From positions 152,499 through 216,498 of the IMG/VR virus record IMGVR_UViG_3300010334_000023: DNA of 64,000 bases, one strand, 5' to 3'. The notes beneath the pieces were generated by a model, which was not told where the DNA came from, ran no database searches, and worked only from the letters and a program-made list of their open reading frames with translations. A program made the translations under genes and the position numbers. Of the stretch, positions 10,686-37,930 are shown piece after piece. Each line of letters starts with the position of its first letter. Positions within the stretch are counted from its first letter, which is position 1.

Positions 10686-10710
10686 CTAGTTTCTACGGAT
10701 TAGTCATACT
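10682..10710 (+). promoter_or_regulatory. Sigma70-like promoter TTGACT-N17-CATACT (thyX, probably leaderless)
   Basis: ATG lies 5 nt after the -10 box with no SD. A TGACTA...TAGTCA inverted repeat overlaps the promoter. Confidence 0.55.
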
Positions 10711-10715
10711 ATATC

Positions 10716-11366: not shown

Positions 11367-11367
11367 C

Positions 11368-12646: not shown

Positions 12647-13655
12647 GATTGGAACCATAGCAGCACTGCTGGCAGTGATGTTTGTAGGCTCAGCTCATGC
12701 TGAGGAAGTGACTACATTGAAGAACAGTGCTGCGGATTTGAATCCCTACGTGGCACAGCGAGACGGCATCTTTCTTGGACTGCTGTTTGAAGCTGTGATG
12801 GGTGGTCCTCAGACCAAGCTCAAGACCAGCACAGAATCCTGGATGGATTCCAGCAACAACACCATAGTGCTCAGCAAAGTACCCTATGTCAGCGGCACGG
12901 TATATGCCAAGGACATTGATGCTGCTGGCAGCGTGTTCTCAGTCACCAAAGATGCGCACTATCGCTATTTCAAAGGCAACGGTCTCCCCAGCACTCCCAT
13001 GGGCAAGTTCCCAGTTGAACAGGGCACAGCTGCCTATAGCTATTATTCTGCTGCACCCGCTGGACACGATCCTAGGACTGGCATACCAGGATCGGATTAC
13101 AGCAGCGCTGCTGCTATCGGTGTGAGCCCATACAATCTTGACGTGATGGTACCACTGCATCCGCGATACAGCAAGATTCCAAATCCCATTGATTCACTGG
13201 TTACCGGAGTGGCGCTAACTGGCACTGTATGGCATGTTGAGGTAGCCAATGCCAGCAGCACAGATTGGTACAACCCACTGTCAATCCTGCCATTGGATGA
13301 CTGCTTTGGACATCCCTACAGCCAGCAGTATCATCTGCACAGCTATTCATGGAAGTGTTTCCCTAATCAGGGTACCACAGGCCCCAGCCCGCTGGTTGGT
13401 TACGCTCTGGATGGATTTGGCATCTATGGCCCACGCGGCGAAGATGGCAAGATGATAACCAATGCACAGCTTGATGAATGCCATGGCATGATCAGCAAGG
13501 TAATGTGGGAAGGCAAGCTTACCAAGATCTATCATTACGTGCTGAACAACGAATATCCCTACAGCATTGGCTGCTTCAGGGGCGTGGTCAATACCAGCTT
13601 GGCTCTGCTGAAGACTACCAAGCATTCGCATGGTATGTTAAAGAGCATGCACTGA
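12639..13655 (+). CDS. Secreted YHYH-domain protein
   Basis: Signal peptide MNKIGTIAALLAVMFVGSAHA; LDDCFGH..QYHLH; SPLVGYALDGFGIYGP; LDECHG; YHYVLNNEYPYSIGCFRG. Confidence 0.7.
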   Translation: MNKIGTIAALLAVMFVGSAHAEEVTTLKNSAADLNPYVAQRDGIFLGLLFEAVMGGPQTKLKTSTESWMDSSNNTIVLSKVPYVSGTVYAKDIDAAGSVFSVTKDAHYRYFKGNGLPSTPMGKFPVEQGTAAYSYYSAAPAGHDPRTGIPGSDYSSAAAIGVSPYNLDVMVPLHPRYSKIPNPIDSLVTGVALTGTVWHVEVANASSTDWYNPLSILPLDDCFGHPYSQQYHLHSYSWKCFPNQGTTGPSPLVGYALDGFGIYGPRGEDGKMITNAQLDECHGMISKVMWEGKLTKIYHYVLNNEYPYSIGCFRGVVNTSLALLKTTKHSHGMLKSMH

Positions 13656-20007: not shown

Positions 20008-20483
20008 GCTTTGCTGATCCTTTTCTTTTGGCTCATGGCATTCTGCATCTCCAGCTTGGTGCGGAACGGGCCTATGAACTCATTCTCTTCCAAGGTCTGT
20101 GTGCGCGGGCAGTAGCTGCCAGTCCAGCCATGTTCAAAATCCAACGCATAGTATCCCGCAGCGAATCTGGCCTTGCCCTTGGCGGTCTTAGCATAGGTAA
20201 CTATAGCACCTTCTTCCACATCAAACACTGCCTTGTGCTTGATTGGATAGCCGTTGATCTGGCCAATCTCATCGTCCTTGTCGTCATCAGTTTCACGTGC
20301 TTCTATCTGCAGGTTACCACCTAGAAAAGCAGTTAGCTCGTCGGCGTCTGCGAACAGCTTGCGATCAAACGGACCAATGACCTTGAAGCCTTCCACAGTT
20401 ACAGTGACCAACCCAGCATTGCTGCCATCCTTTTCAAGGATGTAGCTGGCTTCCGTGATTTCCTTTAGCTTGTAGCTGCTCAT
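20004..20483 (-). CDS. Hypothetical protein
   Basis: 159 aa, ATGA-coupled to the RNase H gene. Confidence 0.8.
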   Translation of the reverse strand: MSSYKLKEITEASYILEKDGSNAGLVTVTVEGFKVIGPFDRKLFADADELTAFLGGNLQIEARETDDDKDDEIGQINGYPIKHKAVFDVEEGAIVTYAKTAKGKARFAAGYYALDFEHGWTGSYCPRTQTLEENEFIGPFRTKLEMQNAMSQKKRISKA

Positions 20484-21469
20484 GCTGTTTCCATCCTCAG
20501 TTGCCCATCGTATTGTGCACTGAAACAGGGTGCGAAGTCATTCACGTTCTTTTCGATCCTGACCAAGCCGTTGATGTTGCAGTAGCGCATGAGGGCCAGT
20601 CCGATCTGCTTCTTGACTGATTGGTTGACTTCGTCGATGATCAGCCTGTCAAACTTGTCTATGAGATCCAACGGCTGTTGAGTTAGGTCGATCAACATGC
20701 GATTTCTCTCGTAGTCGTCCCGCACTCTGTGTTCTACATTCTCGTGATCTAACCACTTGCTAAGCATGAGGTTATTCCACGCATATCCGCGATTATGTCG
20801 GTCTTCGTAGGCAGCTTCTAGCTTGGTCTTGCGCACACCTGGGAACGCACTCATCACGTTGTCGCTGTCATCCCCGCGCATGCACTTTTCAAACAGTATC
20901 CATTCTGGATTTGGCACAGGCATTGGCTTGCCTTGCTTGTTGATTGCCAGCTTGCCATCTTGATCATAGATGCCTGTGTGAGTGTATAGCAGGCTAGCTA
21001 TGCCATTGTATAGTATGACATTTTCTGCGATCAGCTGCTGGAAATCACTGTCGCTGCTGATGATCACGTGCTTGTCATCTGGATGCAGCTGTATCCAGCG
21101 TGCGATCATGTCGTCTGCTTCAGCGTTTGGATGGCGCAGCACCGTGCAGTTGGTCTTGTTCTTGATGAATTCCACGAATCCATCCATGCTTTCGAAAAAC
21201 AGCTGGTCTTCTTCGATTTCTCGTTCTGTGCGTTTGGCAGCTGCTACCTTGCGGTTTGCCTTGTATGGCGTATACACATCCTTGCGCCAGCTTCGTCCTT
21301 CCAAGCAGAAAACGGTATGGCTGCCACTGAATTCTGTCCATACCTTCTTGATGCTGTTGAATATTATGTGCTGCGCCATGCCCAACTGAAGTTCAGTGCT
21401 AGGAGCTCTCACACCATGGCGCACTCTCATGAATAGGTTCTGAGTATCAATTATTAGATAAGTTGCCAT
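20480..21469 (-). CDS. rnh: T4 RNase H-like 5'-3' exonuclease (FEN family)
   Basis: LIIDTQN; WRKDVYTPYKANR; EADDMIA; IISSDSDFQQL; GDDSDNV. GGAGG SD before ATG 21469. Confidence 0.85.
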   Translation of the reverse strand: MATYLIIDTQNLFMRVRHGVRAPSTELQLGMAQHIIFNSIKKVWTEFSGSHTVFCLEGRSWRKDVYTPYKANRKVAAAKRTEREIEEDQLFFESMDGFVEFIKNKTNCTVLRHPNAEADDMIARWIQLHPDDKHVIISSDSDFQQLIAENVILYNGIASLLYTHTGIYDQDGKLAINKQGKPMPVPNPEWILFEKCMRGDDSDNVMSAFPGVRKTKLEAAYEDRHNRGYAWNNLMLSKWLDHENVEHRVRDDYERNRMLIDLTQQPLDLIDKFDRLIIDEVNQSVKKQIGLALMRYCNINGLVRIEKNVNDFAPCFSAQYDGQLRMETA

Positions 21470-21485
21470 GCTCGCCTCCATCCTG

Positions 21486-21513
21486 AGTATAGCACAGCTG
21501 CGATCTATGTCAA
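21486..21513 (-). promoter_or_regulatory. Sigma70-like promoter TTGACA-N16-TATACT with extended TG
   Basis: Upstream of the RNase H gene. Confidence 0.65.
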
Positions 21514-21516
21514 CTG

Positions 21517-22098
21517 TTAGTTCTTGCGCCAGTACCAACCATCGTTGGCAACCATGCGCACCTGCTTGCTGGGTATACCCTGGGCTTTGGCCCAGCTGGT
21601 AACTGCGAAATTAACTGAAAACAGGTTAGCATCATGTCCAGCGACCAATCCGCCTGGGCGCACTTTTGGTACCCAGCTGTCCAAATCGGTTAGAACCTGC
21701 TTCATGCTGTGACCACCATCTATGAACACGAAATCATATGCTTGGTCTTCCAGCAGTGCTGCGGCTTTTTGGCTGTCTTCGCGTATGAAGTTGAACCTGT
21801 CGCCCATCAGAGGTAGGTTGGCCTGCAGTATGGCATAGTTGGCTTCTGCTTCCATCCTGCTCACTGGTTTGTCCCAGTCGTGATAGGGTGCGTAATGATC
21901 AATGCCTGTCAGCATGGCTATGTTTGGACATTCGTTGAGCATGAACCAGCTGTTGATACCAAGACCCACACCTATCTCGATGCCTATAGCAGGATAGGGC
22001 ATGCTCTTTAGCTCGTCCAGGATGCCTCTGCTGGCCTGCTGCCTATAGATGCGAGGCCAATCCGGGCTGTCAAACAGTGTTGTAAGTGTCTGGTTCAC
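21517..22098 (-). CDS. Class I SAM-dependent methyltransferase (Methyltransf_24-like)
   Basis: IEIGVGLG; GIDHY; YDFVFIDGGHS; VRPGGLVAGHD. Confidence 0.85.
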   Translation of the reverse strand: MNQTLTTLFDSPDWPRIYRQQASRGILDELKSMPYPAIGIEIGVGLGINSWFMLNECPNIAMLTGIDHYAPYHDWDKPVSRMEAEANYAILQANLPLMGDRFNFIREDSQKAAALLEDQAYDFVFIDGGHSMKQVLTDLDSWVPKVRPGGLVAGHDANLFSVNFAVTSWAKAQGIPSKQVRMVANDGWYWRKN

Positions 22099-22113: not shown

Positions 22114-22707
22114 TTAGCTATGCTCGGTCTTACCATCCTCTCGCCGAATGCGACGAACATTGCTGACAAACTCTGGATCAGTGGGGGCCATCTCTGCTAG
22201 TATGCTGTTACAGACATCGTTTAGCCAGCGGTTGATCACGTCCTCGTCGCTGCCCTGATAGTTATTAGCTCGCAGAGACTGCACGAATGCATCGTTGTAA
22301 TCTAGCTCAAAGAAGGTCTTGCTGGGATCAACCGGGTCCCAGCTGATCTTGGGCATGGCCATGTAGGGTTCGTTCTTGATGTCTGCGGCCTTGCGTTCGT
22401 GTTCTGGTGCGCTTATGCGATTGTGCTTGAGTTCCACATCCAGCTTGGCCAGTGCCAACGCAGTCTCGTCAGAGTTGTCTAGTTCTGCCAATCTGCTATC
22501 GCGATCATAGGCGCTGATCTTGCCGTAAGCCAGATCGATGTCCAACACGCTCTTGGTAAAGGCCGGGCTATCTAGCCCGTGGCCGATCCGGGCCTTGGCA
22601 ATGTCTAGATCATAGCCTGTGAGATAGTATTCAGCTTCTGCCAGTTCTCGGCTCTTGCCTTTTAGTCCCCAGGCAGCTGGTAACCAACCAAACGGTATCT
22701 TGCTCAT
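22114..22707 (-). CDS. Hypothetical protein
   Basis: 197 aa from ATG 22707, 2 nt after the queE stop. Confidence 0.75.
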   Translation of the reverse strand: MSKIPFGWLPAAWGLKGKSRELAEAEYYLTGYDLDIAKARIGHGLDSPAFTKSVLDIDLAYGKISAYDRDSRLAELDNSDETALALAKLDVELKHNRISAPEHERKAADIKNEPYMAMPKISWDPVDPSKTFFELDYNDAFVQSLRANNYQGSDEDVINRWLNDVCNSILAEMAPTDPEFVSNVRRIRREDGKTEHS

Positions 22708-22709
22708 GC

Positions 22710-23621
22710 TTATCTTCCTATCACGTTGCTGAAGATCCAGCAGTGTATGCGAGCTGCTACGTTGTAGCCGCGCTTGAGCGCTTCTTCCGTGACCCACATC
22801 TGCACGTCTTCCTGTTCTTCTCGAGTAGCCCCCACAGGCATGACCCACACTGGCCAGTTCACGTCTGCTGCGCGGAAAGCATCAACTGCTCGCTCTAGTT
22901 CATCCCAGGTCAGTGGATTCTTGTCAAGCACGAACTTCAGCTGTCCGTGATTGCTGATCAGCCTGTATTCGCGCACGATCTCTGGCTTGATAGCATCTGT
23001 CCAGCTCTCGCCTGAAGTGCCCAGCTTGGGGCTCACGCTCCAGAACAGCTCGCCATTGTACATGCCGCGATTGTTAAAGAACTCATCAAAGTTCTTGCGC
23101 ACAGCCTGCGTGCCGTTGGTCTCTATGGTGATGTGGCGAGGCATGTCCATCTGCATGCGAAGCGTCTGCATGATGTCCACGATGCCTGTCTGGCTCATCA
23201 TGGGTTCGCCGCCGGTGAATGCTAGATGCACGTCCTGTCCGCTGCGAGGATGCACAAATGATCCTCCCTGCAGCCTGCTGCGAAAATCTGCGCAGATCTC
23301 TTCTGCTGTGCTCTGATGTGCCAGATGGCCATACTTGGTGCTCCAGCTGTAGCTGCTATCGCAGCCAGTTGTCCACACCGGCAGATCATCCATCTTGGTG
23401 ATGCCGTTGGCCTGAGGGTCGTATTCCTGATAATCTAGCTTGTAGGTGCTGCGATCTCTGGGATTAGCCTGTCCAAATCCGTCACAGTTGAAGTTGCAGC
23501 CCCAGAAGCGTATCCAAACTGTGGGATGACCAGCATACCTGCCTTCGCCCTGTATGGTAGGAGTAGGACCAGCGTTGCCTCCAAAGGTCTCGCTGTAACG
23601 GTACTTCTTGGCAGTGCTCAT
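22710..23621 (-). CDS. queE: 7-carboxy-7-deazaguanine synthase (radical SAM)
   Basis: TIQGEGRYAGHPTVWIRFWGCNFNC...GCDS; FTGGEP; IETNGT; SVSPKL; LKFV; VMPVG; RIH; near queD and folE. Confidence 0.9.
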   Translation of the reverse strand: MSTAKKYRYSETFGGNAGPTPTIQGEGRYAGHPTVWIRFWGCNFNCDGFGQANPRDRSTYKLDYQEYDPQANGITKMDDLPVWTTGCDSSYSWSTKYGHLAHQSTAEEICADFRSRLQGGSFVHPRSGQDVHLAFTGGEPMMSQTGIVDIMQTLRMQMDMPRHITIETNGTQAVRKNFDEFFNNRGMYNGELFWSVSPKLGTSGESWTDAIKPEIVREYRLISNHGQLKFVLDKNPLTWDELERAVDAFRAADVNWPVWVMPVGATREEQEDVQMWVTEEALKRGYNVAARIHCWIFSNVIGR

Positions 23622-25246: not shown

Positions 25247-25741
25247 TCATATCAGTTCCTCGTTCCACTCCCTGTGTCCTTCTCTAAAGGCCATGTTAGC
25301 TTGCGTTTCGCGCACTTCTACGCGATAGCACCATAGGCGTTCTGACTCGCCTTGGCCCCAGAGATCTGGGATGTATACACTGTTAATATAATTGTATAAC
25401 ATGTCAGCTAGGCCTTCGCAACCAAGCCGGGGTAGGATAGTGAGCTTGGCTAGACGCTTGCTTTGTAGCAACTTAAACGTTTCCAGTTCCGGATCATCTT
25501 CTGCTACCAGCAGCGTGTGATCAAACTGGTCTTCCAGGGTCTTCTTGAGTTCCTTGAGACCGCCATAGTCAGCTGCCCAGTTGCGCACATCCAGATCGTT
25601 GGTGCCAAAGTAGAACTTCATGCTGAACGCATAGCCGTGGATCATGTTGCAGTGGCTGTCAGCACGCCACTGGCGATATGCGCAGGGAAATGCATCCACG
25701 TATTCCTTGGTGCTGGTGTACTTGTAGGTGATTGGTGTCAT
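25247..25741 (-). CDS. queD: 6-carboxy-5,6,7,8-tetrahydropterin synthase
   Basis: SHCNMIHGY (CxxxHG); FDHTLL; CEGLA; VRET; AGGAG SD. Confidence 0.85.
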   Translation of the reverse strand: MTPITYKYTSTKEYVDAFPCAYRQWRADSHCNMIHGYAFSMKFYFGTNDLDVRNWAADYGGLKELKKTLEDQFDHTLLVAEDDPELETFKLLQSKRLAKLTILPRLGCEGLADMLYNYINSVYIPDLWGQGESERLWCYRVEVRETQANMAFREGHREWNEELI

Positions 25742-25819: not shown

Positions 25820-26506
25820 TTATCTTGGTGCGAAATCTTGCTGAAGCTTGACATTGTCGAAGAACTCTTTTTTAGTGCTCTGATCGTTAAAGAACGCGCC
25901 TCGCAACACCGTGGTCTGTGTTAAGCTGCTGTGTGCCATGATGCCGCGATTCTCGCAGCAGCCATGAGAAGCTTGTATGTACACAGCCACGTTCTCGCTG
26001 TCTGTGGCTCTTTGTATCTCTCTGGCTATGTCGTTGCAGAGCTCTTCCTGCAGAGTCCCACGCCTAGCGCACCACTGAGCAATGCGAGTATACTTAGACA
26101 GTCCGATAAGCTTACCAGCGGCAATGATCCCAATATAAGCAACACCGTGAACGGGTTGGTGATGATGGCTACAAACACTACGCAGCTCGCTGCGAACCAC
26201 AAGCATACCTTGGTAACGATCTTCGCTGTCATTGGGAAAAGCTGTAGCAGCTGGGATTGGGTCATATCTACCTCGCATCAGTTCCTTGACATACATCTTG
26301 GCCAGGCGTCGGCCCGTGTCATGGCTGTTTGGATCATTCTCGCGATCGATGATCAAGCTGTCTAACACCGCGTCGAACCGTGCATTGAGCTCGTCGATTA
26401 GCTGATCTTGTTCTCCTGGTTCTATGTATGCGCTGATGTTGTCGTTGGCATTGAATCTAGCACCGGCGGCTTTGATACGCTGGCGAATGGTTTCACTTAC
26501 TGTCAA
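25820..26506 (-). CDS. folE: GTP cyclohydrolase I
   Basis: SVCSHHHQP; GKLIGLSK; LQEEL; HGCCENRG; TTG start with GGGAGA SD. Confidence 0.95.
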   Translation of the reverse strand: MTVSETIRQRIKAAGARFNANDNISAYIEPGEQDQLIDELNARFDAVLDSLIIDRENDPNSHDTGRRLAKMYVKELMRGRYDPIPAATAFPNDSEDRYQGMLVVRSELRSVCSHHHQPVHGVAYIGIIAAGKLIGLSKYTRIAQWCARRGTLQEELCNDIAREIQRATDSENVAVYIQASHGCCENRGIMAHSSLTQTTVLRGAFFNDQSTKKEFFDNVKLQQDFAPR

Positions 26507-26575: not shown

Positions 26576-27148
26576 CTAGAGTTCTGCGCTAGCCGTCCAT
26601 GATCCGGTAGTCATGTCATCGGCTGTGACCCCTGGATGATTGTACATAGGCGGAACCGCTCCGTAGCCTTGCTGATAACCACCGTTGGGACCCATGCTAG
26701 TCGATCCTTGGGCTCCTGTAGCGACAGCAGCACCATGCGGAATTTGAATGGCTGGATTGAGCTGCAGAGTGGAAGTGATCTGATTGATATTTGGCAAGGT
26801 AATAGTGCCGATGCGCTTTGTGATGTCATCTTGGCTCATGCCAAATCTATCATTTATCCTTTCATTGTCACGCTGCTCCCAGATGCTGGACTGGTGATCA
26901 TCTTCGTTCATCACCAGTCCAGCCATGACTGGATCACAGCCTTCGTCTATCATCTTGGTGATGACCTGTCGCATGTTGCTTAACTCGCGGGTTATGCGTG
27001 TGCGTTCGTTTGACAGGTCCAACCTTGACTGTTCGTACTTTTCGCGCAGGTCCTGGCTGTCCTGCTCGTTTTGTTTGAGCTTGTTTAGTGTCTTGCGATA
27101 GCGATAGAAATAGCTATCCATGGCTTCTAGGCGCTGAGTGTCGTTCAT
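26576..27148 (-). CDS. Hypothetical protein (N-terminal coiled coil, low-complexity C-terminus)
   Basis: ATGA-coupled at 27145-27148. Confidence 0.7.
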   Translation of the reverse strand: MNDTQRLEAMDSYFYRYRKTLNKLKQNEQDSQDLREKYEQSRLDLSNERTRITRELSNMRQVITKMIDEGCDPVMAGLVMNEDDHQSSIWEQRDNERINDRFGMSQDDITKRIGTITLPNINQITSTLQLNPAIQIPHGAAVATGAQGSTSMGPNGGYQQGYGAVPPMYNHPGVTADDMTTGSWTASAEL

Positions 27149-27672
27149 GCTACGGTATCCTGACCATATGCCGTCCACGGTGTGAAAGTCTTTCGATCCA
27201 TGAGATCATGCAGGCTATGCACCCAGACTCCTGGATTGGATGCTTTGAAGCCCGTGTCATCGATCTTCACGCAGGTGTTGTAGTTGGCCAAGCCTGCGTA
27301 TGGTAATTTCACAGAGATCTGCGGTATGAACTGGCTGTGGCTGATAGCACTCATCTCAGCAACACCCAGCCAATGTTCGAGATCAAAGTCCAATGTGACC
27401 CAGTAACCTCGATCCAGCAGTGCTACACAGAGGTCATCCCAGCTCTTCCAGGCATCGTAATCTTCGTAACCACTCACTTTGAAGCTTTGGTTAGCACCCA
27501 GATAGATGTGCTTGCAGACCCTGTATCGAGCCGTGTCAGCAACGTCGTCCACATCCTGCCGACCAACCACGAACAGCGTGTGTGCGCCCTTCATCGGAGT
27601 GTTTTCTACTTCGTAGCCCGTGAAGTACTTCACGTCTGTCTTTACGCCATCAATGTAATCTCGTTCCATCAC
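27145..27672 (-). CDS. Hypothetical protein translationally coupled to the dpdA-like gene
   Basis: 175 aa; start overlaps the dpdA stop; alternating beta/alpha pattern (TLFVVG, HIYLGANQSF, WVTLDFD). Confidence 0.75.
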   Translation of the reverse strand: MMERDYIDGVKTDVKYFTGYEVENTPMKGAHTLFVVGRQDVDDVADTARYRVCKHIYLGANQSFKVSGYEDYDAWKSWDDLCVALLDRGYWVTLDFDLEHWLGVAEMSAISHSQFIPQISVKLPYAGLANYNTCVKIDDTGFKASNPGVWVHSLHDLMDRKTFTPWTAYGQDTVA

Positions 27673-29327
27673 ATGTCCTCCACGCTCATTGACACATCGT
27701 TGTTGGCATCCATGCCTGTGATGCTCTGCAGCATCTTCTCATGCTTCATTATCAGATCCATGGGGCGTTCACTGGTAAAGATGTCCTCTACTAGATCCTT
27801 GAACTCCAGCAGATCTGGTGTCAGCAGTTCCTTGGCTTCGCTGATTGGTCTGTCCTGTGCCATGTTGGCTGCCTGTATGGCATTGACATGCAGTTCAGTG
27901 TTGTGGTTCATGGCCAATAGGTAGCTGAAACCATCCATGCTGCTAGGCCACTTCTCTTGATACTTGCTGTGGCTGTCAGCAAAGCGTGCTGTGCCGAGAT
28001 CAAACACGCCGCCGTTCTCGTGGCTGTGTATGGCGTACTCCTTGTAGGCTTTGGTCCACTTGAACGGATCATTGGCCTTGCCTTCGGGAGTTGAAGCCCA
28101 GTAGCCGCTTTCGATTTCTTTCTTGGTAAAAGCTACCTTCTTGCTTTCAAGGTCATCATAGCCCCTGCAGCAGATGTCTCCCACGCTGACCTGATCGCCT
28201 ATCCTGCTGCGCACTGGCGTTAGCTTCTTGGGCAGGTTGTTGGCAATCCAATCGTTGAGCAGCTGTGGGTTGTTCTTCAGCTCTTTCTTGTCCACGATTG
28301 GACCGCCCTTGAAGCCAACATTGTCCGCGCTGAGCTCATGTCCGTAGTACATCTGTCCCTTAGCAGTCATCACAAACGGGCTGGCTGCGTCGAAGCTGAT
28401 GGTCAGCTGTGGATCCACATGCTTCCGCAGCGCACGCTGCAGGGATGTGAGAGCACAGCCAGCCTTGATCTTACCGTTACCCAGATAGTGCAGCCACTCA
28501 CGTCCTGAGAGATAGTTTTCATCTCTCATGATGATCAGTCTGCGCAGATTAATGGTGAAGTTACTTGCCTGCACGTTGGAGAACGCCCAGCTCTCAAAGG
28601 GCAGGTCCTTGGTGTGCTCCCACCACACGTCACCTTCTTCCATGTTGCGTCCCTGTAGGACGTTGAGGAACTTGGTGGCACCCTCCCTGCGATTCTTGAT
28701 GAAGAAGTTGTGGTTGTCCAGGCTGCCAGTCAAGCAATCGCTGAAGCTCTTGAGGCTGGGATGCAGACTCTCGCCTGTGACTGGATCAAGACCATATTTG
28801 ACCAATGCGTAGGTAGGCCAGTCCAATACCATGCTATAGTCTGCCGTGGCTTCTAGCCAACGCAGCAGCTTCATTCGCACATCGTCCTTGTCGTTCTGAT
28901 GTTCTTCCGGTGTCTGCTTGGGCTTGGCATGCCATGGATACTTGAGCACACCGGTAGCAGCTTGGAACCCACCTGAATCGCCTAGCAGCACAGTGTTAGC
29001 GCGATCGCGCTGCTGCACCATGCTCTCCTGCACCCAGCTATCCTGCGGATCCAGTATGGCATGTCCAGCTGAATACAGTGCTACTGGATAGTAGAAAAGG
29101 CTGTTAGCGGGATCGAGGAAGTTGAGATCCTTGAGTCCCTGTGGCAAGCCCTCGGGCATGGTGTCGCGCATGTTGTACTGAACCATGCTGACGATCTTGG
29201 CATAGATCATGCTGATGCTGGGCAAGAACAGGGCATAGTCATTCTGCGTAGCGGCCATGTTCCTGCACTTTGCGTTGAAAGTGAGGTGGTCAGTGTCAAA
29301 GCTGAATCTCTGGAAATCTTTTTTCAT
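27669..29327 (-). CDS. dpdA: tRNA-guanine-transglycosylase-like protein, probable DNA 7-deazaguanine transglycosylase (DpdA family)
   Basis: TGT catalytic motifs GDSGGFQ, MVLDWP, NVLQG, HYLG and SFDAASP; no CxCxxC Zn site; clustered with folE/queD/queE. Confidence 0.75.
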   Translation of the reverse strand: MKKDFQRFSFDTDHLTFNAKCRNMAATQNDYALFLPSISMIYAKIVSMVQYNMRDTMPEGLPQGLKDLNFLDPANSLFYYPVALYSAGHAILDPQDSWVQESMVQQRDRANTVLLGDSGGFQAATGVLKYPWHAKPKQTPEEHQNDKDDVRMKLLRWLEATADYSMVLDWPTYALVKYGLDPVTGESLHPSLKSFSDCLTGSLDNHNFFIKNRREGATKFLNVLQGRNMEEGDVWWEHTKDLPFESWAFSNVQASNFTINLRRLIIMRDENYLSGREWLHYLGNGKIKAGCALTSLQRALRKHVDPQLTISFDAASPFVMTAKGQMYYGHELSADNVGFKGGPIVDKKELKNNPQLLNDWIANNLPKKLTPVRSRIGDQVSVGDICCRGYDDLESKKVAFTKKEIESGYWASTPEGKANDPFKWTKAYKEYAIHSHENGGVFDLGTARFADSHSKYQEKWPSSMDGFSYLLAMNHNTELHVNAIQAANMAQDRPISEAKELLTPDLLEFKDLVEDIFTSERPMDLIMKHEKMLQSITGMDANNDVSMSVEDM

Positions 29328-29332
29328 GTTTC

Positions 29333-29361
29333 AGTATGGCCTATGGCGGTGATCTTGTCAA
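29333..29361 (-). promoter_or_regulatory. Sigma70-like promoter TTGACA-N17-CATACT (dpdA, probably leaderless)
   Basis: ATG 5 nt after the -10 box; no SD. Confidence 0.55.
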
Positions 29362-30455
29362 GCACGAACCAGCTCTTGGATCAAGGGAGTTGCGGTGAAG
29401 AACTTGGTACTAACCTGCTCAGCTTCTGAGCTAGCATGGCTTGACAAGCTGTTGCGGTTCATGAGGTAGCGTATGTGAGTGATCAGCTTGTCCTTGTTGG
29501 CTTGATAGCTGTCCCAGTTCTTGGTCCATTCGCTGGGATAGCATTCGCTCCACATCTCTGAGTAGCTGAGTCGGTCTGGCACCATGGGATAGGTTCCAAC
29601 CAACGCTGCTTCATACATTGAGATGCCCAGAGTTTCTTGCAGGTTAGCGCTGAAAGCGATCTTGCTCTCTGCGAGATGCTGATGGTATTCGTCCTTGGAG
29701 AGCTTCTGTTCCTGTGCCACAAACCATTCATATTCTGGCATGGCTTCGGCCAAGTCCTTGAAGATCTCCAGCTGCTTCTCTGGTGCCAGACGATGCGGGA
29801 ATATGATCTTGTCTCGCTTGGCTGTGGTAGCATAAGGAGCTAGCAGTGGCTGCATGTATTCCATGGGCCAGCCGGTGAGCTTGAGCCGGTTGATCTCAGA
29901 GTCTGGGAAACCAACGATGAACTCTTCGGTCTCATCCTCGGCAAATAATGTCTCTACGCCCAGCAGCTGTCTCAGGAACAGGTTGCTGTGGAATCGCGTG
30001 GCAAACCAGTTGGTGTCATAGGTGTAGAACATGCTGCATTCAGCATTGCGTACCCAGGGTTTATCGCCAACCAGACGTCCCAGGAAGTCCTGTGGATCAT
30101 AGCTGCCAGCGTGCCAAAGACCGTGTATCTCAATCTTTTTGCCAAGCAATTCAGCCATGTAGCGCAGCTGGATCACTGTGGGATTCCACGCATCTGTGTA
30201 AAGGAACTTGTCGCCGTCTTGTATCTTGCCATCCCTGAACAGCTGTGCTATCACGCTCAGCTGTGATGATTTGTAGATGTTGGTAGCACCAAAATCCAAG
30301 AACGCACCTGGCGTTGGTGTGGCAGGTACCTCGTCTCCCTCGATGATGGCCACGGTGTCCACGCCTGCCCCATCCAGCAGGATAGGGATGTGATCATACC
30401 ATTGGCGAGTGTAGCGCGTGTCAATTGGTTCGATGGGGACAACGTACACTGTCAT
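29358..30455 (-). CDS. GT-B (GT4-like) glycosyltransferase
   Basis: IIFPHRLAPEKQ; ANLQETLGISMYEA (E-x7-E); TAATG-coupled to the upstream T-fold gene. Confidence 0.8.
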   Translation of the reverse strand: MTVYVVPIEPIDTRYTRQWYDHIPILLDGAGVDTVAIIEGDEVPATPTPGAFLDFGATNIYKSSQLSVIAQLFRDGKIQDGDKFLYTDAWNPTVIQLRYMAELLGKKIEIHGLWHAGSYDPQDFLGRLVGDKPWVRNAECSMFYTYDTNWFATRFHSNLFLRQLLGVETLFAEDETEEFIVGFPDSEINRLKLTGWPMEYMQPLLAPYATTAKRDKIIFPHRLAPEKQLEIFKDLAEAMPEYEWFVAQEQKLSKDEYHQHLAESKIAFSANLQETLGISMYEAALVGTYPMVPDRLSYSEMWSECYPSEWTKNWDSYQANKDKLITHIRYLMNRNSLSSHASSEAEQVSTKFFTATPLIQELVRA

Positions 30456-30841
30456 TATTCTGCATCCCACTTCAAGATGGCACCGTTCTCTCCATCTTCT
30501 GAGACTTCAATCCACACTTCGCGTCCTGGCCACTTATCTATTATCTTCTCATATAGTTCTTCACTAATCATCTCACAGCTGCGATAGTTTAGCTGTAAGG
30601 TTTTTTGATCATATAGCTTCTCAAGCCATCTTTTTGCCTGTAAAAATTCCACATCACGGTCATTATGCGTGACAGAGATCCAAACTTGGAAGTGGAAGAT
30701 GTGGCGATGCGGATAGCCCAAGAAGCTGACATCGTACTCGTCGCCTGTGGCCAGAGCTGGATCTGTGAGTGCTGCGGGATACTTGTGGATGCCTTCTTTC
30801 TGGAACTTTACCCAGATCATTCTCTTGCGTGGATCTGCCAT
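30455..30841 (-). CDS. dpdL: QueD-like T-fold protein, DpdL-like (predicted 7-carboxy-7-deazaguanine decarboxylase)
   Basis: LGYPHRHIF fits the LxxxHRHxF motif I recall for DpdL; SCEM and VSEDGENG T-fold motifs; lacks the QueD catalytic Cys; GGAGA SD. Confidence 0.6.
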   Translation of the reverse strand: MADPRKRMIWVKFQKEGIHKYPAALTDPALATGDEYDVSFLGYPHRHIFHFQVWISVTHNDRDVEFLQAKRWLEKLYDQKTLQLNYRSCEMISEELYEKIIDKWPGREVWIEVSEDGENGAILKWDAE

Positions 30842-30898: not shown

Positions 30899-33800
30899 CT
30901 AGAGATCCAAAGCAGTCCTAACCACCTTTATCACCATGTTTTGGCTGGTATTCGGGGTGAACAGCAGCTCAACTATGCCTCCCACGATGTCAGCAGACCA
31001 GATGCCGAGGCTGGTGCTGGTATAGATGTCAGCATATTCAGTGAAAAACACATCTGTACCATCTTGGATCAGCATCAGTTGGCTGCTCTGATAGCTGCTG
31101 GTAGCAGTGTTGGTTATCTGCAGCAGATAGTGCGCTGTGCGGAACTGAGTGGTTGGCCACGAATCAACCACAGATTGGAAGGTGCTGTTGCTGGTATAAG
31201 CATTACCGTCTAAGACCCAGGTGTTGCCGCTAACATAGCCGTTGCTCTGCAGCACCTGTACGTTGGCAAAGCCAATGCTGTTGATCTGGTTGAAGCTGCC
31301 TATGTTGGCATAGCTAGCAGCAACATCGTTGGTGACCGTGAGATTGCCCAATACTGACAGGTTGTTGTTGAAAATAGTGCTGTTGCTGACTGTGAGATTG
31401 CCTAGCACAGCAAGGTTAGACGCAAAGGTGCTGTCCTTGCTCACTGTGATGTTGCCCAGCACTGATAGATTGCTGTTGAAGAGGCTGTCCTTGCTCACTG
31501 TGATGTTGCCCAGCACTGATAGATTACTGCTGAAACTGCTGTCAGTGAGAACAGTGATGTTGCCTAGCACAGCAAGGTTAGACGCAAAGGTGCTGTCCTT
31601 GCTCACTGTGATGTTGCCCAGCACTGATAGATTGCTGTTGAAGAGGCTGTCCTTGCTCACTGTGATGTTGTTCTGGAACACAGCAGCATTGGACACGCTT
31701 AGTGCACCGCCCACTGAGAGATCGCTGCTTATGTTGGCAGCATAAGCATATAGTGCTCCGTACACAGCTAGATTGCTGCTGACATTCACGTTGCTGGCTA
31801 TGAGGCTTAGATTACCTAAGCCATTGCTGGTGCTGCCGCCGCTGGCCAAAATCCTCGCATCATAGTCGTTGCCAAATATGCTGCTATGGAAATCCACGTA
31901 TGGTGTGCCAGCTGTGATCCTATTCTGCTGTCCCAGCTCTATGCTGCCATTGGTATCACCACCGATGATCACAGTGCCTGTGGTACCTGAGCTGGCAGTT
32001 AGGCTGCCACCAACCAGCGCATCCAATCCTATGGCAGCCCCGCCCTTGGTCACAAAGCTAGCTGAGCTTAGACTGCTGCTGTTAACTGTGCTGTTGATCA
32101 GCAGCCCTTGTCCATAGATGAACCTTGCCACTTGATTAGCAGCCGCATTGCCACCTTGGGCAAACACGATGTCGTTGTTGAGCATGGTGCCGAGCACGAG
32201 ATTACCACCGCCCGTGACAGCGTTACCGTACATCAATAGGTAACCATCGTTTGCATGGTCAATGGTAGCTTGGTTCCATCCGCTGCTGTTGATGCCCAGA
32301 TCTATGTAGGTGTTGACAGCAGTGCCATTATCCGCTGTGACCACTATGTCTGCGCTGGCGCTGTCACCTGAGCTGTCATTGTGCACGTTTATCTGTGAGC
32401 TGGCATTTACGTTGCCTGCGAACAGTGCTACGGTATTTGGTTGGTAATTGGTATAGTCCTGCACACCAGCGTAGAGCGCAGCAAAGCCGCCGGCTCCGCC
32501 TGTAAACGTGCCGGTCTTGCCACTGATTATGCTGGTATTGCTACCGTTTAAGTTTCCACCTAGCCTGATGTTTAGTCCAACATCCAGGCTGGACACGTTG
32601 GCAGTATTAAGAACAGCGAGATTAGCAGTGTTCAGGCTGACGTTGCCGGCATCCCAGAACAGGCTAGCACTGTTGCCACTGAAGGTATTGCTGTTGCCGG
32701 CAAACTGTATGGTATATTGTGGACCAAAGCTTGGTGTATAGGATGCTGCTGTAACCTGGAAGCTGCCATCTGGGAACAGTATGCCACTGGTAGTTGATGC
32801 TGTGTTACCTATGTGTAGGTTACCATAGACATCCAGTGGATATCTAGCAGTGCTGGTGCCGATACCTATGTTCGAGTTGCTGATCAGCGTGTTAGCAACA
32901 AAGTTTGGCGCAGATATCAGTCCTGTAGCTAGTACATTCTGAGTGAACAGCGTGTTCACGCCTATGATGTTGCCTCCTGATCCAGTAGTAGTGATAGTAC
33001 CGCTGGTAACAAGATTACCAACCGTGGCGTTGCCCGTGGACTGTATGGTAGTGTTGCTGATCAGACCATTGACGGTGGCTGTACCGGCGCTCTGTATGCT
33101 GCTGTTGCTGACCAAGCTGCTTCCGATAATAGCACCGTTGGCCTGTATGGTTGTGTTGCTTAGCAAGCTGTTAGCAGTGATGGTATCTGCTGCCTGTATG
33201 CTGGTGTTGCTGATCACTGTGTTGAACAGACCGGTACCAGGTGCCTGGACGTTGCTGCCGCTCACTATGTCATAGAGCTGTGCCAGTCCCAACGACTGTA
33301 TGGTAGTGTTGCTGAACAGGCTGTTGCCTGTGATCGATCCGTTGGCCTGTATGTATGTGTCGCTGGCAATGCTGCCTGCGATCACCGCACCGTTGCTGAT
33401 CATGCTCTGACCAGTTATGGTACCATTGGCCTGTATGAAGCTGTTGCTGATAAGATGTGCAGCTCTGACAAAGCCCACAGATTGTACATAGATATTGGTT
33501 TCCAGCAGCTGTCCGTACATGCCAAAGGTTGAGTAGATCTGGGTATTGCTGGTGATTATCTCAGCAACCAAACGCCTGCCGGCTGTGATATTGTCTGCTG
33601 AAACGTTACCGCTGACATCCAGCCTGCCACCGATGAGCACGTTGCCATATACTTCCAGATTGGCCTCTAACAGCGCACCATTGCCCACCACCAGATTATC
33701 TGTGAACACGGTGTTATCGGCAGTGATGTTGCCGTTGCTGTTGAAGCTGTTGGCTCTGATCTTTCTGCTAGCAGTGAGAAATTCTGTGGTGATGTTGCCG

Positions 33801-36800
33801 CTGTTTACTATGATGTTTGAATAAACTGTATCGATGGTAGCAGCGTCGCTGACTGTGAGATCTGTGGTAGTGATGCTGGTGTTGCTGACTATGCTGTTGG
33901 CAGTTAGCAATGACGACGCGGTGATATCTGGGCTGGTAATGCTGAGATTACCCACGATCACATCTGCCACTAGATTATTGCTCACCGTGACATTGGTCAC
34001 GTCCAAAGAAACGTTGGCAGCGATAACATTGGCAGATATCTTGTTGACTGCGCTGATATCAGTGGCACTGATATTGGTATTGCTGTTTAGCGAGTTGACC
34101 TGTGCCAAACCGCCAGTGATCAGCGTGGTAGTTACTATTGTGCTGTTGGCCACCACGTTCTGTGCAGAAACCAACACAGTAGCTTGGACATTTGGCGTGA
34201 TAACAGCTAGATTACCAACCAGCAGGTTACCAGTTATGTTGTTGAGAGCAGTGATACCTGCTGAGGTCACGCTGGTGTTAGCAGCGATTAGATCCCCGCT
34301 GACTCTGTTGGTCACGCTGATGTTGGTGCCGCTTATCTCGTTGTTGGCATGTATGTTGGAACCAATCACCAATCCCACAGCTGAGATAGCAGTGTTGGAA
34401 TTCAGTTGATTAGCTAATAGATCTTGACCAAAACGTCCCTGTCCTGTGGTAGCTATCTGGCCTAGGGCATTGACAGCACCGCCTATGCCCACACCGCCAT
34501 TTACTACCAGCGCGCCGCTGGTGCTGTTGATGCTGATGGTAGCATTGCTAAGCAGCAGGTCACCAAACTGAGCAGCACCATAAACGTATCCTGGTACGCT
34601 GGTAAAAGGATTTACCACATTGCTGATACCTGGCTGCACGTTGGTTAGGTAAACGAACCTACCAGTGCTGTTCTGGAAGCCCATGAATGCGTTGTTGTCG
34701 TTGAGGATGAAATAGTTCATCACAACGCCGCGATCATAACCGTCGTTGTACGTGAGAATATTGCCTTCGCCGTTATCAGATCCGACTTTTATGGTAGGAC
34801 CTGTCACGCTGATGCTATTGCTGTTGACGATGGTGCTGTTGCCGCGAACGATGAAGTTACCGCTGACTACCAGATTGCCGGTGAACAGGCTCTGCTGCCC
34901 CCCTACATTGAGATTGCCACCTATGCCCACACCACCTGTGACTATCAGCGCGCCGGATCCGGTGCTACCGCTGGCTGTGTTGTTGGTAATTGTTACAACG
35001 CCGCTGGCAGCGATGTTAGCCGCTGTGATACCCACATTGCTGACTATGGTGTTGCTGCTTAATTGGTTAAGAGCATTGATAGCAGGTGACGTAATACTGA
35101 GATTGCTGTTGATGGTGTTGGCTAGGATACCTTGTGCTGCTTGTATGCTAGTGTTGCTGGTTATGGTCTGCACCACAGCATTGGTGATGATGTTCAGCGT
35201 GCTAGCAGTGGCTTCTGTGTTGCTGATCAACTGATTGACCACAGCGATGCCAGTGGTCTTTAGTGTCTGGCCTTCTATGAAGCTGTTGCTGCGGACCTGC
35301 TGGCCTGATACAAGCCCGTTGGCACTTACCGCAGCATTGCTGCTGAGAGTGCCTACCTGTGCACCGTTCTCGACTACCAGCGTGCTGGTGGTGCTGTTGT
35401 TGTTGACGATCAGACTGTTTACGTTAGCTAGACCACTGCTCTGCAGGGAAGCACCGAAAACATTGTTGTTGCCTATCAAGCTACTGATCTGTGCCACGCC
35501 TGCTATGTTTAGGTTAGCACCATAGATATTGGCATTGCTGATCAGTGCGTTAACTGTGGCAGTTCCAGCAGCCTGCATGGTGCTATTGCTGTTGACCGAG
35601 CCAGCAACCACTTCGCCTATGGCATGCACGAATGTGTTGCTCTTGATAGCATTACCAGTGATGGTACCAATGGCATGTATGTTGAGATTGCTATAGATCT
35701 CACCAAACGTTGCTACGCCCAGAGACTGCATGGTGCTGTTGCTGGTCATGCTCCTAGCAACGATATCTCCTACGGCCTGTATGGTAGAGTTGCTGTTGAG
35801 GCTACCAACGAGCACGTTGCCAGTGACCTGTATGCTGCTGTTGCTGTAGAGACTGCCTACCTGTGCCGAACCTGAGATGTTTAGATTGGCACCACTGATG
35901 TTGGTATTGGCTATCAAGCTGTTGGTCGTGGTGACACCAGCTGTCTGCGTGAACCCATTGCTGTAGATGTTGCCCAGATGGGCAGTACCAGCTATGCCGA
36001 GATTGGCACCGTAGATGCTGGTATTGGCTATCAGAGAGTTAGTGGTGGTCAGGCCAGCTGTCTGGGTGAACCCATTGCTGTATGAGTTTCCTAACCAAGC
36101 AGTGCCAGATATGTTGATACCACTGCCACTGATGTTGGTGTTGGTTATCAGAGAATTGGTAGTGGTCAGTCCTGCGGTCTGCACAGAGCCGTTGCTGTAC
36201 ACGCTACCAAGTACGGCTGGTCCTTGTACGTTTAGGCTACCACCGTATATGTTTGTGTTGGCTATCAAGCTGTTGGTAGTGGTGACACCAGCGGTCTGAG
36301 TGAACCCGTTGCTGTAGACATTGCCTGCCAACGCAGTGCCTGAGATGTTGAGATTTGCGCCGCTGATGTTGGCATTGGCTATGAGCTGGTTGGTAACTGT
36401 CAAACCAGCGGTCTGAGTGAACCCGTTGCTGTAGATGTTGCCAATCCAGGCATTGCCACTGACATTAAGGTTGGCAGTGTAGACGTTAGTATTGCTCAGC
36501 AGCTGATTGGCCAGGATCAAACCGCTGGCATTGATGCTGATGTCTCCGTTGAGGCTTGGTCCGAGACTGGGCAGAGCCTGTCCCAGTGATCCAGGCGCTA
36601 GCACAGTGATCTGGCCGCTCACAGCTAGGTTGTTGTTGACGTTAAGCACGCCGCCGATACCAACGCCGCCGGCCACAGTCAACGCACCTGTGACAGCACT
36701 GTTGCTGGCTGTGAGTGTCTCTATCTTCAGACCAACGCCGTTTACGAAGCGTGCTATCTCGTTGCTTGGGTCGGCGCCGCCTGTGGCAAAAACTATATCA

Positions 36801-37930
36801 TTGGCAGCTAGCGTGCCTAGCACCAAGTTGCCGCCACCGGTGATGCTATTGCCTGCCACGTACAGATAGCCGTCGTTGGCAGCATCTATGGTGCCTTGGT
36901 CAAAGGTGCCGCTGTTGATGCCAAGATCTATGTAGGTATCATTGTTAGTTCCATTGTCTGCAGTGATGACCATGTCGCCGCTGGCCGCAGCACCTGGATT
37001 GATGTTCTGCAGGTTCAGTTGGCTGTAATCGTCTATGTTTGAGCTGAGCTGTAGCACAGTGTTTGGCTGGTACACATAACCATAGGGTATGCCACCATAG
37101 ATCGCACCAAAGCCATAGCTGTCTCCATAGAACACACCGCTGTTGCCAGTGATCTGGTTGACATTGCCTATGATGTTGATGTTACCGCTGACGTTTAGAT
37201 TGCCGCTGATGCCAACACCGCCATGCACAACCAGCGCACCATCCTGAGACGTGGTGCTGTTGATGTTGCTGGTTATGAACATGCTGCTGCTGATCAGCGT
37301 GGCATTGCTGGCGCTGTAGAATAGGTTGCCGCTGTCGCCGCTGAATGCGTTACCAGCACCAGCAAACTGCATGGTGCCTGGAACTCCATAGCTGGGTGTG
37401 TTGGCCGCAGCAGTGTCTTGGAAGCTACCATCAGGGAACACGATACCGCGGATGCGACCAGCAGTGTTGCTGATGGTGATGTTGCCCAGCACATGCAGCT
37501 TGCTCACTGGCACAGCAGTGCCTATGCCCAACCTCACGTTGCTATTGTCAAAGGCAAACAGGCTGTTGCCGGCAAAAAGGTCGTTTTGGTTGAACTGGAC
37601 TGCGCCGTTACCGCCACCAGGCGGTGTACCATAGGCTGCAGTGGTCTGATAGGTACCATCTGGCCATATGATGCCGCTGGTGGTTGTTGCAGTGTTGGCA
37701 ATATGGATGTTACCCCAGACGTCCACGGGATAGCGCACGGTGCTGGTACCAACACCAAGATTAGCAAAGAATCCTTGGTTTACCGTGATGTTACCGGGTT
37801 GGCCGTCAAAGGTAACGAACTCTACCGCGCCGTTGCTGTTTAGTATGCGTGGTCCGTTCTTGCCCAGGGCGAGATCAACAGAAACACCGCTAAGAGCAAA
37901 ATCAAATCTTGGATTGTTTGGCAGCGTCAT
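30899..37930 (-). CDS. Giant virion fibre / tail-associated protein (2343 aa, beta-solenoid repeats)
   Basis: Asn/Ser/Thr/Gly-rich with about 18-aa periodicity; duplicated module; C-terminal FRTAHYLLQ...EYADI...VELLFTP domain of a type common in T4-like phage fibres. Confidence 0.75.
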   Translation of the reverse strand: MTLPNNPRFDFALSGVSVDLALGKNGPRILNSNGAVEFVTFDGQPGNITVNQGFFANLGVGTSTVRYPVDVWGNIHIANTATTTSGIIWPDGTYQTTAAYGTPPGGGNGAVQFNQNDLFAGNSLFAFDNSNVRLGIGTAVPVSKLHVLGNITISNTAGRIRGIVFPDGSFQDTAAANTPSYGVPGTMQFAGAGNAFSGDSGNLFYSASNATLISSSMFITSNINSTTSQDGALVVHGGVGISGNLNVSGNINIIGNVNQITGNSGVFYGDSYGFGAIYGGIPYGYVYQPNTVLQLSSNIDDYSQLNLQNINPGAAASGDMVITADNGTNNDTYIDLGINSGTFDQGTIDAANDGYLYVAGNSITGGGNLVLGTLAANDIVFATGGADPSNEIARFVNGVGLKIETLTASNSAVTGALTVAGGVGIGGVLNVNNNLAVSGQITVLAPGSLGQALPSLGPSLNGDISINASGLILANQLLSNTNVYTANLNVSGNAWIGNIYSNGFTQTAGLTVTNQLIANANISGANLNISGTALAGNVYSNGFTQTAGVTTTNSLIANTNIYGGSLNVQGPAVLGSVYSNGSVQTAGLTTTNSLITNTNISGSGINISGTAWLGNSYSNGFTQTAGLTTTNSLIANTSIYGANLGIAGTAHLGNIYSNGFTQTAGVTTTNSLIANTNISGANLNISGSAQVGSLYSNSSIQVTGNVLVGSLNSNSTIQAVGDIVARSMTSNSTMQSLGVATFGEIYSNLNIHAIGTITGNAIKSNTFVHAIGEVVAGSVNSNSTMQAAGTATVNALISNANIYGANLNIAGVAQISSLIGNNNVFGASLQSSGLANVNSLIVNNNSTTSTLVVENGAQVGTLSSNAAVSANGLVSGQQVRSNSFIEGQTLKTTGIAVVNQLISNTEATASTLNIITNAVVQTITSNTSIQAAQGILANTINSNLSITSPAINALNQLSSNTIVSNVGITAANIAASGVVTITNNTASGSTGSGALIVTGGVGIGGNLNVGGQQSLFTGNLVVSGNFIVRGNSTIVNSNSISVTGPTIKVGSDNGEGNILTYNDGYDRGVVMNYFILNDNNAFMGFQNSTGRFVYLTNVQPGISNVVNPFTSVPGYVYGAAQFGDLLLSNATISINSTSGALVVNGGVGIGGAVNALGQIATTGQGRFGQDLLANQLNSNTAISAVGLVIGSNIHANNEISGTNISVTNRVSGDLIAANTSVTSAGITALNNITGNLLVGNLAVITPNVQATVLVSAQNVVANSTIVTTTLITGGLAQVNSLNSNTNISATDISAVNKISANVIAANVSLDVTNVTVSNNLVADVIVGNLSITSPDITASSLLTANSIVSNTSITTTDLTVSDAATIDTVYSNIIVNSGNITTEFLTASRKIRANSFNSNGNITADNTVFTDNLVVGNGALLEANLEVYGNVLIGGRLDVSGNVSADNITAGRRLVAEIITSNTQIYSTFGMYGQLLETNIYVQSVGFVRAAHLISNSFIQANGTITGQSMISNGAVIAGSIASDTYIQANGSITGNSLFSNTTIQSLGLAQLYDIVSGSNVQAPGTGLFNTVISNTSIQAADTITANSLLSNTTIQANGAIIGSSLVSNSSIQSAGTATVNGLISNTTIQSTGNATVGNLVTSGTITTTGSGGNIIGVNTLFTQNVLATGLISAPNFVANTLISNSNIGIGTSTARYPLDVYGNLHIGNTASTTSGILFPDGSFQVTAASYTPSFGPQYTIQFAGNSNTFSGNSASLFWDAGNVSLNTANLAVLNTANVSSLDVGLNIRLGGNLNGSNTSIISGKTGTFTGGAGGFAALYAGVQDYTNYQPNTVALFAGNVNASSQINVHNDSSGDSASADIVVTADNGTAVNTYIDLGINSSGWNQATIDHANDGYLLMYGNAVTGGGNLVLGTMLNNDIVFAQGGNAAANQVARFIYGQGLLINSTVNSSSLSSASFVTKGGAAIGLDALVGGSLTASSGTTGTVIIGGDTNGSIELGQQNRITAGTPYVDFHSSIFGNDYDARILASGGSTSNGLGNLSLIASNVNVSSNLAVYGALYAYAANISSDLSVGGALSVSNAAVFQNNITVSKDSLFNSNLSVLGNITVSKDSTFASNLAVLGNITVLTDSSFSSNLSVLGNITVSKDSLFNSNLSVLGNITVSKDSTFASNLAVLGNLTVSNSTIFNNNLSVLGNLTVTNDVAASYANIGSFNQINSIGFANVQVLQSNGYVSGNTWVLDGNAYTSNSTFQSVVDSWPTTQFRTAHYLLQITNTATSSYQSSQLMLIQDGTDVFFTEYADIYTSTSLGIWSADIVGGIVELLFTPNTSQNMVIKVVRTALDL
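31329..31690 (-). repeat. 54-bp (18-aa) tandem repeats with an exact 110-bp duplication
   Basis: NLSVLGNITVSKDSLF(N)S units; 31399-31508 is identical to 31561-31670 (offset 162 = 3 x 54). Confidence 0.95.
35834..36535 (-). repeat. Six 117-bp (39-aa) tandem repeats
   Basis: Aligned gaacccrttgctgt anchors at 35834, 35951, 36068, 36185, 36302 and 36419; GNxYSNGFTQTAGxTTTNSLIANTNISGxNLNIS. Confidence 0.9.

Follow-up and report, generated by a model that had tools for sequence, protein, structure and literature searches.

A predicted glycosyltransferase (GT) is encoded within the 7-deazaguanine DNA-modification gene cluster of a jumbo phage, and the same association recurs in hundreds of phage loci and in bacterial mobile islands, suggesting that these genomes may carry a sugar-decorated deazaguanine base. 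The window analyzed here is a 64-kb stretch forming the end of a 216-kb IMG/VR virus contig, which CheckV rates as approximately 42% complete, so it comes from a jumbo phage. Between 20 and 31 kb of this window, every gene is encoded on the minus strand. The initial annotation had described a GT-B gene overlapping a dpdL-like gene in TAATG, ending 30 nt before dpdA and lying well away from two glycan operons, and this observation was confirmed. Its interpretation, that the GT may hypermodify the DpdA-inserted base or the product of the T-fold enzyme to give a new DNA base, was only partly supported, because the association with the deazaguanine genes is strong whereas the acceptor remains inferred.

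Organization of the deazaguanine gene cluster

The features of the cluster are summarized in Table 1. The GT ORF starts at the ATG at 30455–30453, a start that agrees with the N-termini of its homologues (consensus MTxYxVDIEPxDTRY), whereas an alternative GTG start at 30470 is not supported; the ORF stops at the TGA at 29360–29358. The upstream DpdL gene ends in the TAA at 30457–30455, so that the two genes share one base, and 30 nt (29328–29357) separate the GT gene from the ATG of the DpdA gene. The ORF downstream of QueE can be opened from a GTG at 22848, but this would overlap QueE, and the likely start is therefore the ATG at 22710. The distance from glycan operons was checked only in part: an NTP-transferase and two GT2 genes lie at 46.7–52.1 kb, and among the ten ORFs scanned between 1.2 and 13.7 kb, Pfam models found radical-SAM/SPASM, ThyX, and YHYH but no glycan genes.

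Table 1. Genes of the deazaguanine cluster, with positions in the 64-kb window
Position	Strand	Length	Assignment	Family matches
30455..30841	-	128 aa	DpdL, QueD-like T-fold protein, proposed 7-carboxy-7-deazaguanine (CDG) decarboxylase	phrog_17812, E 2.5e-31; phiST DpdL by tblastn, E 6e-11
29358..30455	-	365 aa	Predicted GT-B (GT4-like, probably retaining) glycosyltransferase	
27669..29327	-	552 aa	DpdA-type guanine transglycosylase, long form	
27145..27672	-	175 aa	Conserved protein of unknown function (p175)	
25820..26506	-		FolE, GTP cyclohydrolase I	Pfam PF01227, E 2.7e-38
25247..25741	-		QueD, 6-carboxy-tetrahydropterin synthase	Pfam PTPS, E 2.9e-16; phrog_2389, E 9e-36
22710..23621	-		QueE, 7-carboxy-7-deazaguanine synthase (radical SAM)	phrog_2076, E 4.7e-50; Fer4_12
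22114..22710	-	198 aa	Conserved protein downstream of QueE, function unknown (p198)	

The 128-aa protein carries the motif LGYPHRHIF, which fits the LxxxHRHxF signature that distinguishes DpdL from QueD, in which CxxxHGH occurs instead (PMC10516641). The motif is conserved in 29 homologues, and the invariant residues are H19, H45, R46, H47, S88-C89-E90, and E115/D116/E118/N119/G120. The protein is homologous to CGPG_00067, the DpdL of Cellulophaga phage phiST. The 552-aa protein has no Pfam TGT hit, its profile did not reach TGT among PDB sequences, and an hhalign comparison with the DpdA of phage BUDD was insignificant. However, all 50 best PDB matches of its AF2 model (pLDDT 86.4) were tRNA-guanine transglycosylases, and both GDSGGFQ (residues 116–122) and the FD313AAS motif are invariant, so that it is identified at the fold level as a long DpdA-type transglycosylase. 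The homologue in PA5oct is 31% identical. FolE, QueD, and QueE are encoded downstream, and no QueC was found in the 216 kb of the contig, which represents only about 42% of the genome. This composition corresponds to the DpdL branch of the pathway, which yields 2'-deoxy-7-deazaguanosine (dDG) in phiST.

Of the two conserved proteins of unknown function, p175 had no Pfam or PDB profile match, its ESM-feature hits to GH/DUF5696 families scored under 0.9, and it showed no similarity to phiST CGPG_00066, which is an AAA-type kinase-like protein. A counterpart of p175 is present as gp122 of Acidovorax phage ACP17. No family was found for p198, which is also present in Phosso and PA5oct.

Predicted structure and conserved residues of the glycosyltransferase

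Single-sequence searches with the GT gave no usable match in Pfam, NCBIfam, PHROGs, PADLOC, or PDB. The Pfam Glycos_transf_1 and Glyco_transf_4 models did not detect it, the only Pfam hit being RXYLT1_C at E 0.0057, which is below the cut-off, although some homologues showed faint PF00534 hits. In contrast, the family profile matched the C-terminal domains of GT1-family chains among PDB sequences at E 1e−5. The family is very large, with more than 8000 relatives in the 90% clusters, 1117 clusters at 50% identity, and at least 594 IMG/VR loci. An AF2 model built on 68 representatives (pLDDT 94.8) showed two Rossmann-like domains with an inter-domain cleft, that is, a GT-B fold, and its closest structures, according to Foldseek (probability 1.00) and VIA, were retaining GT4-type enzymes: sucrose-phosphate synthase (Z 25.4), BshA (Z 23.9), MshA, LmbT, glycogen synthase, and the tetrahydrobiopterin glucosyltransferase. 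In the 68 representatives, the EX7E motif (E274-x7-E282) and R222/K227, together with K254/Y257, are near-invariant to invariant (at least 90% of sequences), and the roles of the motif and of R222 and K227, the latter two in binding the donor diphosphate, are assigned by analogy. The enzyme therefore looks like an active NDP-sugar transferase, as judged from sequence and predicted structure.

Conservation of the association with DpdL and DpdA

Whether the dpdL-GT-dpdA synteny is conserved had been proposed in advance as a criterion that could refute the interpretation, and the outcome was strongly in its favor. Among the 80 best IMG/VR loci, with GTs of 51–100% identity, DpdL lies immediately upstream on the same strand in all 77 that have upstream DNA, with a median gap of 239 bp; the other three start within 380 bp of a contig end. 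DpdA and p175 occur in 69 of these loci, FolE in 65, QueE in 49, and p198 in 46. Because most of these loci come from related phages, they are not 80 independent observations, and the stronger evidence is provided by divergent cases. The GT lies next to DpdA or DpdL, in different gene orders, in six unrelated groups of isolated phages: Sinorhizobium phage Phosso (DpdL-GT), the PA5oct group (DpdA-GT-DpdL), Acidovorax phage ACP17 (p175-DpdA-GT-DpdL-QueE), Xanthomonas phages BUDD and X1 (GT-DpdA-DpdL-QueE), Burkholderia phage BCSR5 (GT-DpdA), and the T4-like cyanophage Synechococcus phage BUCT-ZZ01 (DpdL-GT). Furthermore, three family members of only 34–37% identity, on contigs of smaller phages, again sit beside a DpdL carrying the HRH motif.

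The GT was also found in 21 chromosomal loci of Alphaproteobacteria, including Shimia, Sulfitobacter, Pseudooctadecabacter, Pelagibacterium, Devosia, Ochrobactrum, Methylobacterium, and Azospirillum. It is directly adjacent to the same long DpdA in 20 of the 21 loci, and in 19 it is adjacent to a multi-pass membrane protein of the Vut_1/YhhQ family, the family of the preQ0 transporter; the GT thus sits between this YhhQ-like protein and DpdA. These loci lie on islands with integrase or resolvase genes and defense genes. A DpdL lies 8–10 kb away in two of five genomes checked and is absent from the other three. The signature residues of both GT domains are kept in the bacterial copies, so the chemistry is presumably the same. 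These results indicate that the linkage is far beyond chance and that the GT very probably belongs to the deazaguanine module.

Functions argued against by the genomic and structural evidence

The GT is not needed to make dDG, because phiST DNA is completely dDG by mass spectrometry (PMC10516641) and phiST has no member of this GT family. The DpdL phages RHph_I1_18, Ahp1, and D479 also lack the GT, and those three also lack the long DpdA type. Therefore, the GT is an add-on to the module.

The initial annotation had invoked the T4 alpha- and beta-glucosyltransferases as precedents, but this analogy is weak, and a T4-type hydroxymethyl-pyrimidine glucosyltransferase was rejected. In the structural comparison, T4 alpha-GT (1y6f) was only at rank 35 (Z 18.2), below many generic GT4 enzymes, and beta-GT was not among the top 50; in BFVD, a "DNA alpha-GT" entry was at rank 42. 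No ThyA-family hydroxymethylase, which would supply the acceptor, was found in four of five complete GT-carrying phage genomes (ACP17, BUDD, BCSR5, and BUCT-ZZ01) or in the 216-kb contig, and the window contains only ThyX. The analogy with glycosylated tRNA queuosine, also raised in the initial annotation, does not apply either, and a tRNA-queuosine glycosyltransferase was likewise rejected, since nothing found here could build the cyclopentenediol side chain, in a search of the 216 kb that covered QueC but not models of QueF, QueA, and QueG.

Proposed function of the glycosyltransferase

The most likely function, to which we assign a probability of about 0.5, is glycosylation of the 7-deazaguanine nucleobase by a dedicated, optional tailoring enzyme of the module. 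In this view, FolE, QueD, and QueE would make 7-carboxy-7-deazaguanine, DpdL would remove the carboxyl group to give 7-deazaguanine, the TGT-fold DpdA would exchange this base for guanine in phage DNA, and the GT would add a sugar either to the free base before insertion or, more likely, to the base once it is in DNA. The virion DNA would then carry a glycosyl-7-deazaguanine instead of plain dDG. Our analysis establishes the predicted fold and catalytic motifs of the GT, the identities of DpdL and DpdA, and the very strong genetic linkage, whereas the activity itself, the acceptor, the modified atom (N2, as with the glycosyltransferase HuiG, or C7), the sugar, the product, and the order of steps are inferred, there being no chemical data for any GT-carrying phage. 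The sugar is most plausibly GlcNAc or glucose taken from a host UDP-sugar. Two observations hint at UDP-GlcNAc as the donor: the top structural matches BshA and MshA both use it, and a remote homologue in Xanthomonas phage PhiXhv-12 lies next to GlmS and an LmbE-type deacetylase.

A chemical difficulty, not raised in the initial annotation, is that 7-deazaguanine has no OH or NH on C7. Glycosylation at N2 or O6 would sit on the pairing edge or in the minor groove and could hinder polymerases, N2 itself lying in the minor groove. A C7 C-glycoside would be the natural major-groove analogue of glucosyl-hydroxymethylcytosine, but C-glycosylation by a GT4-type enzyme has no precedent. The protein is also acidic (pI 4.9; N-terminal domain 4.6), unlike what might be expected of a DNA-binding GT; however, every protein of the cluster, including DpdA, is acidic, and charge was therefore not used as a test of DNA binding. 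A more speculative possibility, which we consider somewhat less likely than not, is that the sugar is placed on the DpdA-inserted 7-deazaguanine, creating a glycosylated purine analogue in DNA as the purine counterpart of glucosyl-hydroxymethylcytosine. The link could be at C7 in the major groove, with decarboxylation by DpdL freeing that carbon, and the same GT-DpdA pair, fed by a YhhQ-like transporter, would mark the DNA of mobile islands in Alphaproteobacteria.

Alternatively, the GT may glycosylate a small molecule of the pathway that does not end up in DNA, such as the released guanine, surplus 7-deazaguanine or CDG, or a pterin by-product of FolE and QueD, in order to control pools, detoxify, or pull the base exchange forward. 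This reading is less likely but has some support. The nearest structures (BshA, MshA, LmbT, SenB, and the tetrahydrobiopterin glucosyltransferase 5zer/9v0l) use small-molecule acceptors, which fits a free base or other metabolite as well as it fits DNA; the acceptor domain is acidic and rich in aromatic residues; HuiG acts on a free base (PMC7439116); and the GT is most tightly linked to DpdL, which is predicted to act on the free base. However, in the bacterial islands the GT is paired with DpdA and a transporter without pterin or CDG genes nearby, and three such genomes lack DpdL altogether. Moreover, TGT-type exchange with 7-deaza bases is regarded as irreversible, so no pull is needed.

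It is also possible, though unlikely, that the GT acts at the DNA or protein level but not on deazaguanine itself, by glycosylating another DNA position, by modifying or activating DpdA or another protein, or as a non-catalytic helper of base insertion comparable to DpdB in the bacterial Dpd system. GT-DpdA is the near-constant pair in bacteria (20 of 21 loci), the two genes overlap start to stop in PA5oct, ACP17, and BUDD, and expression of ACP17 dpdL and dpdA without the GT gave no dDG in E. coli (PMC10516641). In contrast, the conservation of the catalytic and donor-binding residues argues against a purely structural role, and the occurrence of the GT with DpdA proteins too divergent to match each other by HMM argues against a fixed protein-protein fit. 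The phiST dpdL-dpdA pair also failed in E. coli, although phiST has no GT. An ordinary glycan, envelope, or virion-protein function, with the position inherited by descent without any functional link, appears very unlikely. Phages often carry GT4 genes, Pfam gives no specific family, and the PhiXhv-12 homologue lies about 100 kb from the deazaguanine genes of that phage. Nevertheless, adjacency is kept through several gene orders, in unrelated phage types, down to 26–37% identity, and in bacterial islands, and the GT is absent from four DpdL phages that have other DpdA types.

Significance and comparison with known systems

The eight 7-deazaguanine derivatives catalogued in DNA all carry small C7 groups and none carries a sugar (PMC10516641), so a glycosylated deazaguanine would be a new class of natural DNA base. 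In the literature searched, no report of a glycosylated deazaguanine in DNA was found, in agreement with the statement of the initial annotation that none was known. If correct, the proposed function would bear on why dpdL plus dpdA alone could not be reconstituted from ACP17, and on which modifications defense nucleases such as the END family encounter in nature. It would also bear on the therapeutic jumbo phage PA5oct, which carries the module: a 2025 preprint shows that its DNA resists restriction enzymes with G in their recognition sites and infers a modified G, although we found no chemical identification of that base there (PMC12191111). The family includes phages already in culture, and the transporter-GT-DpdA islands hint at a cellular epigenetic or self-marking use.

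The vertebrate enzymes QTMAN and QTGAL also add a sugar to a 7-deazaguanine derivative in a nucleic acid, but their acceptor is the cyclopentenediol of queuosine in tRNA. The T4 alpha- and beta-glucosyltransferases are likewise phage-encoded GT-B enzymes that decorate a modified base after replication, and T4 alpha-GT shares the retaining GT-B fold, but they are no closer to the GT than generic GT4 enzymes are. The phiST system (FolE-QueD-QueE-DpdL-DpdA3) shares the CDG pathway lacking QueC, a DpdL with the same LxxxHRHxF motif, and a TGT-superfamily DpdA, but its DpdA3 is short (259 aa) and it has no GT; here, a long DpdA is present and the GT, p175, and p198 are added. The paper describing the phiST system does not mention any glycosyltransferase (PMC10516641), and the GT is a widespread, previously unremarked component of deazaguanine DNA-modification modules in phages and in bacterial islands. 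A closer precedent for the chemistry is HuiG of the huimycin cluster of Kutzneria albida, a GT4-type GT-B enzyme encoded next to FolE, QueD, and QueE homologues, which attaches GlcNAc to N2 of a free 7-deazaguanine-derived base (PMC7439116; bioRxiv 10.64898/2026.04.15.718813). The parallel rests on the shared GT4 class and this genomic association; HuiG belongs to secondary metabolism and acts on free O6-methyl-preQ0, with no DpdA and no DNA involved. Finally, DpdC, DpdM, and DpdN are, like the proposed role of the GT, extra enzymes clustered with DpdA that change the inserted base, but they use amidation, methylation, or formylation chemistry at the C7 side chain and have different folds.

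Genes accompanying the deazaguanine cluster in the window

Two proteins of unknown function, of 175 aa and 198 aa, were found to travel with the cluster in most related phages; the 175-aa protein is also ACP17 gp122, and the 198-aa protein is also found in Phosso and PA5oct, but no family or fold could be assigned to either. Directly downstream of the deazaguanine cluster, we observed a methyltransferase of the Methyltransf_24 type and a 5'-3' exonuclease; the methyltransferase recurred in only 4 of 80 related loci. Directly upstream of DpdL lies a 2,343-aa protein full of SN/TN-rich repeats, which is probably a fibre or surface protein. Elsewhere in the window, the phage encodes a RuBisCO large-subunit-like protein (Pfam RuBisCO_large, E 8e-37), which lies next to a sugar-nucleotidyltransferase and upstream of two GT2 genes. 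In addition, a radical-SAM protein is followed by a SPASM-domain protein, suggesting a pair resembling a peptide or cofactor maturase, and genes for ThyX and a YHYH protein were also detected.

Coordinates of the additional features in the window and in related phage and bacterial loci (locus handles L002–L127 denote the individual extracted loci)
Sequence	Position	Strand	Feature
Window	7748-10245	+	Radical-SAM protein and SPASM-domain protein
Window	10716-11366		ThyX
Window	12639-13655		YHYH protein
Window	20480-21538	-	5'-3' exonuclease
Window	21517-22098	-	Methyltransferase
Window	22114-22710	-	198-aa protein
Window	27145-27672	-	175-aa protein
Window	30455-30841		DpdL (alignment A6)
Window	30899-37930	-	Repeat-rich protein
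Window	46671-47381		Sugar-nucleotidyltransferase
Window	47641-48849	+	RuBisCO large-subunit-like protein
Window	49973-52104		Two GT2 genes
L002, Pseudomonas phage PAC2 (PA5oct group)	9806-10764		Small phosphoribosyltransferase gene next to QueE
L092, phage BUCT-ZZ01	3453-3914		Small phosphoribosyltransferase gene next to QueE
L088, Xanthomonas phage PhiXhv-12	4756-7990		Remote GT family member, GlmS and deacetylase
L116, Shimia ponticola	7492-12318		Island core (also in loci L107-L127)

Related gene arrangements in bacterial islands and other phages

Alphaproteobacterial chromosomes carry a conserved island core composed of a YhhQ/Vut_1-like membrane protein, the GT, and a long DpdA, to which a 586-aa unknown protein is added in Rhodobacterales. 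The core is flanked by a LuxR-type response regulator, a MASE1 histidine kinase, ABC-3C defence genes, and an integrase, and it may constitute a cellular deazaguanine DNA-marking system. In phage PhiXhv-12, a remote member of the GT family (HMM E 9e-38) occurs beside GlmS and an LmbE/BshB-type deacetylase, which is the gene pattern expected for GlcNAc transfer followed by deacetylation; this phage also has FolE and a weak DpdA-like ORF elsewhere in its genome. A small phosphoribosyltransferase gene sits next to QueE in the clusters of both PAC2 and BUCT-ZZ01, and in PA5oct a truncated NAD-epimerase-like gene is also present; this hints that part of the pathway may run at the nucleotide level in some phages.

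Finally, the alignment of DpdL homologues showed an invariant Ser-Cys-Glu motif (S88-C89-E90) in addition to the HRH motif. The published description stresses the loss of the QueD cysteine, so this other conserved cysteine may matter for the mechanism.
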